Shown here: positions 11,902 through 48,617 of the stretch, one piece after another
How the letters are laid out: every line of letters starts with the position of its first letter
Position numbering within the stretch: position 1 is the stretch's first letter
Assembly (NCBI RefSeq): GCF_001194135.2
Contig: NC_068984.1
Location: 87,917,945-87,981,944, forward strand
Origin: Octopus bimaculoides
Taxonomy: Eukaryota
Direction of reading: 5' to 3'
DNA length: 64,000 nucleotides
The notes under the pieces: model-generated
What the model was told of the DNA's origin: nothing
The model's input: the letters and a program-made list of their open reading frames with translations, nothing else
Databases searched by the model: none
Program-made: the position numbers and the translations under genes

Positions 11902-12162
11902 GAAACCTATGCGTAAGCAACATCTGCAGTACTGGTACCTTCGGCCTGTCATGTTCGGAGAAATCAAGTATACGTGTGACCGAGGTACGACTCGAGCCTA
12001 CGTCTACGTCAATAGAAATAGTCCGAGGAAATCTTCAGACCCTGTGCAATGGTCGAAAGTACTGTGCAGCCGATGGCTTGCGTACGTTGATTCCACATTG
12101 TCAACTAGAATTAACAGGTGGAATAATACCCGTTGTAGCAGTTTACTACTCGTGTCAAACAG
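11902..12162 (+). CDS. Internal coding exon (phase 1-1, 261 nt) encoding a divergent SUEL/galactose-rhamnose lectin-like domain of a single-pass membrane protein
   Basis: Acceptor tttcatttcag|G and donor ACAG|gtgagt. Open frame xNLCVSNICSTGTFGLSCSEKSSIRVTEVRLEPTSTSIEIVRGNLQTLCNGRKYCAADGLRTLIPHCQLELTGGIIPVVAVYYSCQT. The C..LSC...I.V, LCxGxxxC and VxYxC spacing matches the SUEL fold by eye. Confidence 0.85.
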
Positions 12163-12524
12163 GTGAGTTATAGTTTTATTTCTTCTTTTTATTGAATAAA
12201 TTAGAGACACGTTTACATTCAACGTAGATCTAAACTAAAACAACAGAGCAATAAAATAAATATAATAAGGTAATTTAGATATTTGTTAAATTCTAATGTA
12301 GATCAGGGTCTTTTTTCTATTTCCATTTGAATTGAAAATATTTGCATCAAAAATAGAGAAAAAAACAAATATAAACAACATTTAGAATCATCGCCGTAAA
12401 ATGTAATATTCTGGCAAGTGTAGTTATGTACTATTTATTTTCTTTAGTTTATTTTATATTTCTGTTTGTTTTTCTTATGACTTGGAAGAAGAACAACACT
12501 CAGATTTTTTTCAATGTGTACAAG

Positions 12525-12662
12525 ACAATAATTAGATAAGAGTAGCAATATATATTTGCAGAAGTGATACTAAAGCATATAATAATAATAATAATAATAA
12601 TAATAATAATAATAATAATAATAATAATAATAATAATAATAATGATAATTATAATGATATAT
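12525..12662 (+). repeat. Local duplication: about 60-bp unique flank plus (AAT)n plus short tail, repeated at 13568-13717
   Basis: acaataattagataagagtagcaata(t/c)atatttgcagaagtgatactaaagcatat(aat)n..gataattataatgatatat occurs twice. Confidence 0.9.
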
Positions 12663-15600
12663 GCATATATATATATATACAGAAAATGTTATTTAATAGA
12701 TGTTGTAGGATAACTGTTTTCATTTAGTGAGGTTGCTATGTTACTACCTTTTCAATTATCGCTTAAATTCGTACTGCCCTTGTTTTTTGCCTGCAATCCA
12801 TTTGAAATGAAATGGCAAGATATTATAACTTACCTTACAATGGTTTTAGTGGTAAGAAAAAAGTATGTTGCCTGGGCTGTTAAGTGATATCAACGTTTGT
12901 GAATGTATTTGAAAAGTTTGTATTTGTATATGTATGTTTTGTTCCTTTATCCTTTGGAATTTTTATTTGATGTTCTTTTTACATTAGTCCTTCAATTTGA
13001 CTTTTTAAATATAGCGTATATTTGTTAGCAATGGTGATGTATTACTGAATGCTTTACTAAGTTTCTAAAGCAGTGATCTTCCTTGGACAATATTTAGAGG
13101 GGCTTTGGGTTGTTGTTTATTTTTAATATAGGTGACTTTTACATGAAAATATATATTAACAAAACTATACAATATTTGAAACACTGAGCATTTCTTGCAA
13201 CCATTAATGATATGATCACCCCCAGAATAAATTCACACCTTTTAAAATCGTGTTTTAATTTAAAATTCCTGGAAAAAAGAAATTCCAGAAAAAATATATT
13301 TATTCTTGGTTTTCTACATCTTTATCTTTCGTATCTAATAGTATGAAGATTATTTCGTTTCTTCTTTATTTTCTTTGTTGAATTCCAAATCCGGTTTATA
13401 AGCACTTCTCATTTCTAGTTACAAATCCCTTAAACGAGATACAAAGCTGTCGCATAGTGTATCACTGAAACAAAGTAACGCATAGAGTGATATTTTTGGT
13501 ACAATATATACTTAATATTACAAAAATAATTAATTTTTGAACGTACATTTAAATATTCTTCGTCTCCACAATAATTAGATAAGAGTAGCAATACATATTT
13601 GCAGAAGTGATACTAAAGCATATAATAATAATAATAATAATAATAATAATAATAATAATAATAATAATAATAATAATAATAATAATAATAATAATAATGA
13701 TAATTATAATGATATATNNNNNNNNNNNNNNNNNNNNNNNNNNNNNNNNNNNNNNNNNNNNNNNNNNNNNNNNNNNNNNNNNNNNNNNNNNNNNNNNNNN
13801 NNNNNNNNNNNNNNNNNNNNNNNNNNNNNNNNNNNNNNNNNNNNNNNNNNNNNNNNNNNNNNNNNNNNNNNNNNNNNNNNNNNNNNNNNNNNNNNNNNNN
13901 NNNNNNNNNNNNNNNNNNNNNNNNNNNNNNNNNNNNNNNNNNNNNNNNNNNNNNNNNNNNNNNNNNNNNNNNNNNNNNNNNNNNNNNNNNNNNNNNNNNN
14001 NNNNNNNNNNNNNNNNNNNNNNNNNNNNNNNNNNNNNNNNNNNNNNNNNNNNNNNNNNNNNNNNNNNNNNNNNNNNNNNNNNNNNNNNNNNNNNNNNNNN
14101 NNNNNNNNNNNNNNNNNNNNNNNNNNNNNNNNAGAGAGAGAGAGAGAGAGAGAGAGAGAGAGAGAGAGAGAGAGAGAGAGAGAGAGAAGTATATACACAT
14201 ACAAGAGCATATATACGATGATTATATCTTAACTGTAGAAACAACTGGAGAACTTAATCATATAATCTTCAAATATCATTGAGATCTTTGCTTTTTATGA
14301 TATTTTGCTCTGCACATTCTTTTGAACCAATTTATTTCTATGAAAACTCATTCCTACTATGGATATTGCAGTGCAGTAATAATATGTTGAAGTTTAACAT
14401 GTTAAACAATTGAGCTCTTAAATTCTATGGATATATTTTTAAAGTGCTTATGCACTAATTCAATATGTAACACACACACACGCACATTCACACAAAAATA
14501 CAAGCATATATGTATGTGTGTATGTGTTTATGTGCGTCTGCATGTATGTACGTACGTATAATCTTGCATATATGTACAAATGTATATATGCGTATATGCA
14601 TATATACGGGCATGCATATATGCACACATATTCATGTATATAAGTATCCTTATCACAATAACCAGTAGAAAAACGTCCAGAGAGTAGTTTCTCTGCCAGT
14701 ATTTATTATATAGATTAAAATATCCGTGATGTTGAGTATGAATAATTATAAATTTCTTAAACTATCTTGGTTCTGGGGTCGAAATATTCAGGAAAAGTTT
14801 CTGTATTCGTAAATTATCAAGAAATGCTTGAATAAGATGATTTCATTTTTTTGAAGCAATAATTGCGATCGAAAGTTGGCTACAGATAGAAATTTGATAA
14901 CGCAGCAAAGAAATAATTACTATAGAGGTATAGTATCATTTGAAGACAATATTACTGTATTTATTAGTGTTGTAAAAATGTTTAAAATTAAAAGGTATCT
15001 CAATGAGAATGAGTAATCATATTCTCAGTATTAATTTGCAGCAAGTTATTATTTAGTATATTTTCAATTACATTTACATAAGTAATTTTTGGGTGGCAGT
15101 AATAATATATTTGGTTCAGAAAAGAATCACAAGACGGATTCTTGAAGCCGAGCCATCTAACAGGTGATTTAAAGATAAATGAATAACGAAATGGTTGGAT
15201 AATATCCATAGTCTGAGTTGATCAAACATGAGAATCCAGCCGGTAAATGTAATGATCGGTGATTCTGATAGGACCCTTTGGAGGAGGTGTCTGAGGATCT
15301 ATCTCTACAACCCTCCCAAGAATAGTGGGTGAAGAAGATGGATGGATGGATATTTGTAACTCTGCGTGGTATTTACAAAGTCTTAAACCATTATATTCCT
15401 TATAGTTGTCTTCGCTATGACTTACAATGACCCCAAGATAAATTTTCTTCTATTTCTTTCATTATGGGGTCTTTTCATTATGGGGTCTTTTGCCTTTTTC
15501 TCTGAAAACAAAAGGGGCTGTGGTCAGAACTGGAGCGGAGCCGGCTCTGCCGGGTTTAAATCCTCCAACCAAGCTGCATATTACGGCAGCACGCTCACAA

Positions 15601-46383: not shown

Positions 46384-46408
46384 ATTTTAGTATAATATAG
46401 TATAGTAT

Positions 46409-46560
46409 ATCTATCTATCTATCTATCTATCTATCTATCTATCTATCTATCTATCTATCTATCTATCTTCTATCTAGCTAGCCATCTACATACATACATA
46501 CATGCATACATACATACATACATACATACTTACATACATGCATACAAACATACATACATA
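46409..46560. repeat. (ATCT)n and (ATAC)n microsatellites
   Basis: Directly visible in the sequence. Confidence 0.95.
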
Positions 46561-47908
46561 CAAAAATACTCTGTTGATGTTGAAATTCCAATGAAGGAGC
46601 CTTGGTTTTAGGTTAGAAACCGGCTCTTTCTCTATTGACAAGAAATTTTGAAATAAAACTGAATAACATACATATATACATGTGTGTTTGTGGGGGGCTG
46701 TAATCTACCTTGGTGTTAGCTGATAGTTGTACTACTATGCGACATCCTTTCTCAAAGATAGAGATATTCATTTTGATCCTTAAACTTTAATTTTGTGCAA
46801 AGCCATCTTGTCAAAATAGCACCCGAGATTTTATTGAAAATATATTGAAAATATAAATATTATACTTGTCTTAACTGTTTCACTTGACGCTTACAGGTCA
46901 AGAGTGTGACATGTGAATAGCACTTGACTAAGTAAACGTTATCCAAATAATTTATTAAAATGCATGAAGGATTGTGAAGGTGTATGTATGGAGGGTGACA
47001 GTAGAAAATTATTCTGATTTTGTAAACGAACTTCCCTGTTTCAATGAATGAACTTCTTTACTTCACAATTTCTGAGATTCCATACAAGATTCTCAACCAA
47101 GCGACCAAACAAAGAAACATAAAAACAGCAACGCCGGTATTTGAGTTCGTGTAGTAGTTGGATAAGATAGATGAGTGTGTTTACACTGATGTTAACAATA
47201 TAATTTCTCCCACTCCATTAAACTGAATATAGTGGCCGTTATTTTTTATACGGATAGCATTTCTCAGTAGTTTCACTCGGTCAAAACAGTAATGTGTAAC
47301 AACTACTCGTGTAGATTATTGTAGATAAATTCTCAAGTGTGGAGAAGATAATGTTTCTCTGAGGAGATTTAATGATACCGAAACATGACTGGAGTTATAA
47401 CCAGTAGTTATTCAGACCAGATTAAATTAAAATCAGAAATTGAACTAATCTTATTTTCTTCAAAGTGTTGGTTTTAAAACATTTTGCATGAACCAAAGCC
47501 TTATGAATGTCCTTTGGCAATGTGTTTAATCTCAATGTAAGAACATTGTAGATGAGCATTGAAGGGAGTTCACAGTGCGTCATATCCGTTACACAGTTTC
47601 GATTCCAGTCTGTATTCAAACTGAGTCGCTAATAATGAACATTTCACAGTCTCACTCGTCTCTGTATATAGAGTTTCTGAAGCTTACCGGAATTTAAGAA
47701 GTAAATACTTGTATTATTTACAGCATCTATTCAATCAACCGTAATTGAGCATGGAAAATATTTCGTGTTCTATCAACATAAAACTATAGCTATCAACGAT
47801 AACTATCAACATAAAATTAGATCTGTTTTTTTTTTTCAGGTATAATTTTGTTTGCTTGTGTTTCTGTATTTATTTTTTTCCAATTAGATTTATTTTACTT
47901 GCTTTCAG

Positions 47909-48617
47909 TTACATCAAATATTATCAAGCGGGTCAATACCACATCGAATCAAGTGAAAGAGCGCTGCTTAGAAAAGAAGATACGCCAATGGGTTCTTTCC
48001 CTCGAGGAGATGACGAATTAAATACAATCATTCACAAAACAGACACTATTAACAGTAATTCCAGACATAAAGGCACTGATGATTTTAAATGTAAATCAGC
48101 GGATGGTTCTGCGAAGGATACTAGTAGTTGTAAAGGAACTCTACGTAACGGAGGTATTACAACTTTTTCTCCTTCAACTACACCAACACGTTCTGTTAGT
48201 GGATTGTATTCGGCAGTTGCTATGGAAACGCCCAGAAAAAGCTGGGCTTCTGTAGGACCAGCCAGTCTTGATTTGGAGGAAGATGATGATGCACAAGTTA
48301 GTGGTTCAATTCAATTACATATACCGAAACGTCAATCGTCAGAGAAACACAGAGTCTTTTCTGATAGATTTTCGGATAGTGTCGAACATTACTTAGTGAA
48401 CAACGATGAATACGCTGTTGTAAGAAAACCTGTACGAGGTTCAACAAACGGAGCCACAGAAGAAATATACGCAACCCCACTGGATAATATGGAATTAAGG
48501 AATCAGTTCCAAGTAACGACAGGGCCTTACTACGCAAAACGACAAACAAACCCGAGACCAACATTGGCCTTCACAGACACCAGTAAAAATAGTAAATGGG
48601 AAGATGAATATTTTTAA
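47909..48617 (+). CDS. Terminal coding exon: 235-aa cytoplasmic tail
   Basis: Acceptor ttttacttgctttcag|T in phase 2, matching the TM exon. Long open frame YIKYYQAGQYHIESSE...SKNSKWEDEYF* (track ORF 47856..48617) ending at TAA 48615-48617, followed by an AT-rich 3' region. Confidence 0.85.

Follow-up and report, generated by a model that had tools for sequence, protein, structure and literature searches.

Domains of the rhamnose-binding lectin (RBL) or SUEL type are attached to few receptors, namely the latrophilins, EVA1C and PKD1-like proteins, and there they bind proteins that steer neuronal wiring. The RBL domain of mouse latrophilin-1 holds rhamnose through Glu42 (one residue after the first cysteine), Tyr63 and Lys120, together with Gly117, and the E42D, E42Q and K120R substitutions dramatically reduce or abolish its binding (PMC2430599). 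The same paper argues that receptor-attached RBL domains recognise non-carbohydrate ligands, and it notes that the second domain of EVA-1 is without the sugar-binding Glu and Lys (PMC2430599). EVA-1 itself crosses the membrane once and combines two lectin-like domains with a short tail (PMC4133157). We analysed a stretch of 64,000 nucleotides from Octopus bimaculoides (contig NC_068984.1, positions 87,917,945 to 87,981,944; hereafter the window), which has a G+C content of 34.5% and 12 N-gaps. The window carries six coding exons of LOC106872337, a gene whose product is predicted to join a very divergent, sugar-blind RBL-like ectodomain to one transmembrane (TM) helix and a conserved cytoplasmic tail, and whose more distant relatives we detected only in other molluscs.

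A preliminary description, made by eye from the letters of the window, had joined five exons into one open frame encoding a SUEL-like domain, a stalk, a TM helix and a tail. All five exons, with their AG/GT sites and phases, were correctly placed (Table 1); a polypyrimidine tract and AG lie ahead of each, and GT follows each internal one. The splice product, 409 amino acids (aa) long, has the proposed layout: 87 aa form a Cys-rich domain, about 61 aa a stalk leading to the TM helix, and 236 aa the tail. Searching databases with the spliced exons, we found cephalopod orthologues and an exact RefSeq match: from residue 2 to its end at 409, the product occurs unchanged within O. bimaculoides XP_014774770.1, which is isoform X2 of LOC106872337, named "uncharacterized protein". 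The gene had been called uncharacterised and hidden. The former is right, as it has no functional annotation, and the latter is not, since RefSeq predicts four isoforms. The gene itself is hence not new.

The preliminary description had also allowed for further exons in the assembly gaps. One exon had indeed been missed, an alternatively spliced cassette that does not lie inside a gap. We located it through its exact match to RefSeq isoforms X1, X3 and X4; it adds 18 residues, and all three isoforms contain the product of the six exons in full and without a mismatch. All N-gaps in the exon span are intronic, the nearest lying 228 nucleotides (nt) from any exon, and tblastn with orthologous proteins (recorded on contigs of 43-177 Mb) covers residues 27-435 with nothing missing between the window exons. 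Therefore, no constitutive coding exon is concealed by the gaps. A six-frame search of the window found none of the signal-peptide exon (MHNGQELPLIRSVLLLHFFGFITNSFG), an alternative 22-aa exon and the MITRFP alternative start, in agreement with the earlier failure to find a signal-peptide exon, which lies outside the window. The missing 5' exons are probably located upstream, because in O. vulgaris the gene extends over about 140 kb. The exon encoding the Cys-rich domain, which is 99% identical to octopus orthologues by tblastn, is the second or a later coding exon of LOC106872337. Reading all six frames of window positions 1-11900 and 48618-64000 for open stretches of 90 aa or more, we saw no further convincing coding exons, and several AATAAA/ATTAAA signals occur downstream of the stop codon from 48833 on.

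Table 1. Coding exons of LOC106872337 and features of its introns, in window coordinates.
Feature	Position	Strand	Length, phase	Details
SUEL/RBL-like Cys-rich ectodomain exon	11902..12162	+	261 nt, phase 1-1	GNLCVSNIC...VAVYYSCQTG, 87 aa; AG/GT
Stalk exon 1	37510..37632	+	123 nt, phase 1-1	LMQIQQHILRQPVKNLKQGEATCGITPGQEQAITTLSRFE; tblastn and AG/GT
Cassette exon, alternatively spliced	39421..39474	+	54 nt, phase 1-1	VVDGQNAIQTSVGHTLRQ; cag/gtaagg sites
Stalk exon 2	40750..40809	+	60 nt, phase 1-1	DNGHKNSNTAVDPRGTNKKL; tblastn and AG/GT
Transmembrane-helix exon	44436..44511	+	76 nt, phase 1-2	KAVVSYVFLTVAVLAILIAISFIIG; tblastn and AG/GT
Last coding exon, cytoplasmic tail	47909..48617	+	709 nt including stop, phase 2	236 aa and stop
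Open stretch beside the RVT_1 fragment	20525..20926	+		No Pfam match
Reverse-transcriptase fragment, intron 1	21658..22575	+	306 aa open	Pfam RVT_1, E = 7.4e-18
Open frames entering and leaving a gap	29366..30708	+		790-nt gap at 29573..30362; KYLGVIEGDNIKH before, DRKIDANRPDIILKD after
Decayed mariner-like transposon, intron 3	43205..44047	-	two open stretches	Transposase_1, E = 2.1e-11; HTH_48, E = 2.5e-6

To assign the fold of the ectodomain, we used a profile (A3) of 17 domain copies from cephalopod and other mollusc family members. Against the PDB, the top five matches of A3 were all RBL domains: the L-rhamnose-binding lectin 5h4s came first (E = 4.5e-8, three domains), followed by LAT-1 of C. 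elegans, ADGRL3, ADGRL2 and Lphn1. The alignments covered profile positions 8-86 in four of the five cases and 5-85 for LAT-1. Comparing A3 with six RBL domains in hhalign gave a probability of 95.8% (E = 7e-9, columns 8-86). A model of the O. vulgaris domain that AlphaFold2 (AF2) made from A3 reached a predicted local distance difference test score (pLDDT) of 92.8 and a predicted template-modelling score (pTM) of 0.83. When this model was searched against the PDB with Foldseek, the top six matches were latrophilin/LAT-1 lectin domains with probabilities up to 0.97, the latrophilin-type matches including 6vhh_B, 8suf_E, 8djg_F, 5afb and 2jx9. The SUEL-like domain recognised by eye thus holds by way of the mollusc intermediates. 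The Pfam check that had been recommended for it did not succeed: Gal_Lectin (PF02140) gave no match at E <= 10 with exon 1 alone or five cephalopod proteins, nor at E <= 1 with nine mollusc relatives. Searching PDB sequences with a full-length cephalopod profile returned chance matches only (ribosomal L13, HAUS1). The octopus domain keeps six of the eight canonical RBL cysteines (C8, C17, C48, C54, C66 and C84), both loop-1 cysteines being absent in cephalopods. In the copies of other molluscs, one of the canonical loop cysteines is present and a further cysteine stands at the Tyr63 position. From the profile matches and the model we conclude that the ectodomain probably has an RBL-like fold, homologous to the described domains and very divergent from them.

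We then checked the residues that hold the sugar in latrophilin-1. In the profile, PDB and hhalign alignments, the octopus equivalents of Glu42, Tyr63 and Lys120 are Ser9, Leu30 and Pro76, respectively; other molluscs have Arg at the Lys position and Cys at the Tyr position. The YGR, DPC and KYL motifs are missing from the octopus domain. As the Glu, Tyr and Lys are all replaced, the domain is predicted not to bind monosaccharides, and the word lectin would apply to its fold and not to its activity.

Of all 19-residue windows in the protein, only those in the TM exon exceed a Kyte-Doolittle mean of 1.6, the maximum being 2.93. The product is predicted to be a type I single-pass membrane protein because it has this single hydrophobic segment, its orthologues begin with a signal-like sequence, and its gastropod relatives carry Arg-rich flanks following the TM helix. 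Ser, Thr, Asp, Glu and Lys abound in the tail. Its conserved blocks are SY.KYYQAGQYHIESSERALLRKEDTPMGSFPRGDDE, GLYSAVAMETPRKSWASVGPASLDL, VEHYLVNNDEYAVVRKP, EEIYATPLDNMELRNQFQVTTGPYYAKRQ and the C-terminal KWEDEYF. Family-wide, the tails have in common a near-invariant juxtamembrane block, SSE[KR]xAL..[DE]DTP[LM]xxF, and the blocks [VD]xHYx[VI]Nx[DE][DE]YAxVxK, FxPT[ST]GPY and a C-terminal W-x-[DE]-[DE]-hydrophobic; the double-tyrosine block reads HYx[VI]Nx[DE][DE]YAxV[RQK]K. The composition of the tail and its low AF2 confidence would fit a disordered scaffold with short linear motifs. Invariant tyrosines (HYLVNNDEYAVV; EEIYATP in cephalopods and PTYDN in gastropods) resemble phosphotyrosine docking sites. 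The acidic aromatic C-terminus (KWEDEYF, or WxDDL in gastropods) resembles the W-/Y-acidic ligands of kinesin light chain, and also a PDZ ligand; the JIP1 C-terminus, YTCPTEDIYLE, is such a Y-acidic kinesin-light-chain ligand (PMC6214655).

The preliminary description had suggested that this might be a lineage-specific adhesion, guidance or immune receptor. Gastropod and bivalve family members refute a restriction to cephalopods. Performing a HMMER search with the cephalopod profile against 1.84 billion cluster representatives, we obtained 14 matches at E <= 1e-3. These were the O. vulgaris query, an octopus-like exon fragment from Logan, one protein without recorded organism, and 11 gastropod or bivalve proteins: Haliotis (XP_071102785.1), Aplysia (LOC101858660), Nucella (two), Pomacea (LOC112565111), Lottia (LOTGIDRAFT_172729), Batillaria, Elysia (GFR97122.1), Lymnaea (CAL1527693.1), Babylonia and Pecten (LOC117343554). 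E-values to the 12 non-cephalopod proteins ranged from 1e-16 to 2e-4, with several matched stretches in each. All family entries are hypothetical or uncharacterized, and some of them have the automatic UniProt name "CUB domain-containing" or, in Elysia, "SUEL-type lectin domain-containing".

The non-cephalopod members are 490-935 aa long. On alignment, their shared plan starts with a signal peptide and two related Cys-rich domains, continues with a CUB domain and a stalk, and closes with the TM helix and the tail. This plan holds for most full-length members, some entries being partial or without the first domain. The CUB assignment is supported by a Pfam CUB match in Pecten (E = 1.1e-5) and by a match of the family profile to a cubilin CUB domain (E = 2.5e-6). 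The cephalopod domain is closest to the second RBL-like domain (domain E-values 1e-7 to 8e-10). Like the octopus protein, the mollusc relatives have this second domain, the TM helix, SSEKxALW..DDTPL, VEHYxxNNDEYAxVRKP, GPY and a W-x-D-D C-terminus. Unlike cephalopods, they mostly have an additional N-terminal RBL-like domain and the CUB domain, both of which are absent from all cephalopod proteins compared. A tblastn search of the window with 11 mollusc proteins, made for relic exons of the CUB or the first domain, matched only exons 1 and 5. We also considered the stalk as a decayed CUB remnant, in which "ATCG" aligned with "SCG", and rejected it: with a hidden Markov model (HMM) of the CUB region, the real stalks scored below many of 600 shuffled ones. 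Two other homologue searches gave little, which looks like a limit of the search method and not a biological one; the 17-sequence domain alignment found nothing, and the full-length family alignment found cephalopods and one tail fragment only. A literature search combining SUEL, CUB and mollusc yielded nothing relevant by title or abstract. The family was detected only in molluscs, and the cephalopod gene is its reduced member with one domain.

Transcript-like sequence supports the gene model. The Logan contig L001 (SRR29271458; 1574 nt) contains a complete 437-aa open reading frame (ORF) without interruption. From one end to the other it aligns with the spliced octopus coding sequence, crossing all four junctions, and with the genomic window at the exons only. 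Searching 5.8 billion proteins, we found four clusters, all of them cephalopod: O. vulgaris, O. sinensis (LOC115211097), Argonauta hians and a Logan-assembled protein, whose cluster also contains an entry from the cuttlefish Acanthosepion pharaonis. The octopus product is 99% identical to those of O. vulgaris and O. sinensis, 94% to that of Argonauta and 73% to the cuttlefish-type protein.

Comparing the octopus gene with the cuttlefish-type transcript, we found the synonymous sites saturated (proportion of synonymous differences, pS, 0.64-0.88). Only pN and pS could be used, saturation precluding dN/dS. The proportion of non-synonymous differences (pN) was 0.018 in the juxtamembrane block, 0.07 in the GLYSAV...SLDL block, 0.10 in the TM exon, 0.11 in the N-terminal domain and 0.14 in the C-terminal blocks, and it rose to 0.33 in the first stalk exon and about 0.41 in two variable stretches of the tail. 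The TM and juxtamembrane regions are the best conserved, at 88% and 97% identity between octopus and cuttlefish-type sequences. The first stalk exon is 46% identical in the same comparison, and it has one cysteine that is invariant among cephalopods. As non-synonymous divergence lies, in most regions, far below synonymous divergence, this is a functional gene and no chance ORF. In the decapodiform orthologue (L001 and the Logan proteins P0010 and P0011), some transcripts have 14 additional aa, KSLFSGNMEKNLPG, inserted after the signal peptide and ahead of the domain. At that point, octopus isoforms include a 22-aa exon of unrelated sequence, GIQLQATINEFTNNTVSYRRNR. An alternative exon at this junction is hence conserved in its position and not in its sequence.

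How might such a protein work? By analogy with the RBL domains of latrophilins and EVA-1, the ectodomain would bind a protein ligand or a cis partner instead of a sugar. The signal would pass via short linear motifs (juxtamembrane, double-tyrosine, GPY and acidic C-terminal) of a largely disordered tail. These motifs would dock cytoplasmic adaptors, for example SH2-type phosphotyrosine readers or W-/Y-acidic trafficking or motor adaptors. Conservation peaks in the TM helix, the adjoining juxtamembrane block and the distal motifs of the tail, which indicates conserved membrane or cytoplasmic partners. Overall, we lean towards a protein-binding co-receptor or adhesion-type receptor, with any particular partner being much less certain. 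More tentatively, and with the odds rather against the whole of it, LOC106872337 might represent an undescribed, phylum-restricted receptor family in which sugar-blind RBL and CUB domains were joined to a new tyrosine-motif tail. The cephalopod ectodomain would then have been stripped to one RBL domain, and the protein could be a neural-wiring or cell-recognition co-receptor of cephalopods with a new intracellular signalling module, one that functionally parallels EVA-1 or latrophilin and evolved independently. On this reading, the cephalopod TM helix and tail would have stayed almost unchanged over hundreds of millions of years, an undated, general time scale.

Several observations weigh against the receptor reading. 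Cephalopod-only profiles found nothing in Pfam or PDB, and hhalign of the cephalopod-only alignment against RBL domains gave a probability of 16.9%; the fold assignment of the cephalopod copy depends, in these alignments, on the mollusc intermediates. The best Foldseek E-value was 0.025, no match reaching 1e-3 or below, and TM-scores were 0.47-0.55. With two RBL cysteines missing, the loop structure may differ. A full-length AF2 run on a four-sequence alignment had a pLDDT of 34 with very low confidence in the tail and was uninformative, and the structural check proposed in the preliminary description was hence fruitful for the domain model and not for the whole protein. The SH2, kinesin-light-chain-type and PDZ readings of the tail motifs are pattern resemblances only. 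Furthermore, a literature search by six locus identifiers of the family found no paper that mentions the locus.

Among described receptors, the latrophilins (ADGRL1-3, LAT-1) give the best structural matches of the domain model and stand among its top profile matches, and their RBL domain is likewise receptor-attached and used for protein-protein binding (teneurin, TOL-1). Unlike them, the octopus protein has a single TM helix and no olfactomedin, HormR, GAIN/GPS or seven-transmembrane (7TM) part. Its domain is without two of the eight cysteines and the YGR/DPC/KYL motifs of the latrophilin RBL, with TM-scores of about 0.5. The preliminary description had judged the TM helix and tail to be unlike those of latrophilins and EVA1C-type receptors, and Pfam agreed: there was no match to 7tm_2, GPS, HormR or OLF in exon 1, the tail or the cephalopod proteins, nor to FAM176 (PF14851), at E <= 10, and the nine mollusc relatives likewise showed no GPCR domain. 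Having one TM helix and no GAIN/7TM region, the protein is therefore not a latrophilin. Another candidate is EVA1C/EVA-1, the Slit/MADD-4 co-receptor with two SUEL domains, of which the gene could be a diverged cephalopod orthologue. The general plan is the same (type I, an RBL-type ectodomain, one TM helix and a presumably needed cytoplasmic tail), protein ligands are expected for both, and the second EVA-1 domain likewise lacks the sugar-binding Glu and Lys (PMC2430599). However, five cephalopod proteins at E <= 10 and nine mollusc relatives at E <= 1 match neither FAM176 nor Gal_Lectin. In the non-cephalopod members, a CUB domain separates the lectin-like domains from the TM helix, and the EVA-1 description makes no mention of one (PMC4133157); the tail is at least 236 aa long with motifs of its own whereas that of EVA-1 is short, and the HMMER search over 1.84 billion representatives returned no EVA1C-like protein from another phylum. 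EVA-1 also has two domains against one in cephalopods, and our family was detected only in molluscs. On the features tested, the gene does not appear to be an EVA1C orthologue, and we hold this origin to be improbable. Almost equally improbable, in our estimate, is a membrane-anchored carbohydrate-binding lectin of immune or gamete recognition. The RBL-like fold would suit it, as would the best PDB sequence match, 5h4s, a true L-rhamnose-binding lectin. The secreted SUEL-type lectins (5h4s, CSL3, SUEL) belong to the same fold family and have 5h4s_A as the best profile match, but they are secreted, are built of tandem repeats and keep the Glu, Tyr and Lys of the sugar site; the octopus protein is membrane-anchored, has one domain and thus no tandem repeats for avidity, and its site is not conserved. 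Even E42D, E42Q and K120R strongly impair or abolish the binding of the latrophilin-1 RBL (PMC2430599), and the octopus positions hold Ser, Leu and Pro with YGR and DPC absent. Being membrane-anchored and having lost the sugar site, the protein is therefore not a classical secreted RBL.

The main alternative, to which we give a small but real chance, is that the protein is an auxiliary, non-signalling subunit of a channel or receptor complex that acts via its TM and juxtamembrane segment. NETO, SOL-1 and LEV-10 are CUB-domain single-pass proteins of this kind. The CUB domain of the non-cephalopod members speaks for this role, as does the finding that the TM and juxtamembrane regions are the best conserved. 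But cephalopods dropped the CUB domain and yet retain the tail motifs, the distal blocks of the tail are strongly conserved beyond what a TM-only role would require, and Pfam and PDB searches gave no similarity to the NETO/SOL family. An annotation artefact or a decaying pseudogene, which might be suspected as the 5' exons lie outside the window and the transcript evidence comes from related species and not from O. bimaculoides, is effectively refuted by the RefSeq identity, the intact ORF in Octopus, Argonauta and cuttlefish-type sequences, the contiguous transcript-like contig and the low non-synonymous divergence.

The introns of LOC106872337 contain remnants of mobile elements (Table 1). 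Intron 1 (25 kb) includes a retroelement reverse-transcriptase fragment. Intron 3 carries, on the reverse strand, two open stretches that match parts of a mariner/Mos1-type transposase. They belong to a decayed DNA transposon of the mariner-like kind, which lies some 400 nt ahead of the TM exon. The frames on either side of the 790-nt gap look like another retroelement ORF; the flanks of this gap gave no Pfam match at E <= 0.01. Repeats are abundant throughout the window, including poly-A/T, (AT)n, (GA)n, (CA)n and (GAA)n tracts (for example at 13600-13720, 15750-15920, 20320-20500 and 28380-28590). They account for the long "ORFs" of low complexity in the ORF list, and repeats also border several of the gaps.

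Our finding overturns nothing known. To the short list of receptor-attached RBL domains, LOC106872337 adds a mollusc-only family whose architecture is different and whose tail is unlike anything characterised. The loss of one RBL-like domain and the CUB domain in cephalopods, together with near-frozen intracellular motifs, makes a conserved cytoplasmic partner worth seeking. Studies of the octopus nervous or immune system gain a candidate orphan receptor, and LOC106872337 and its relatives now have a domain-level annotation.

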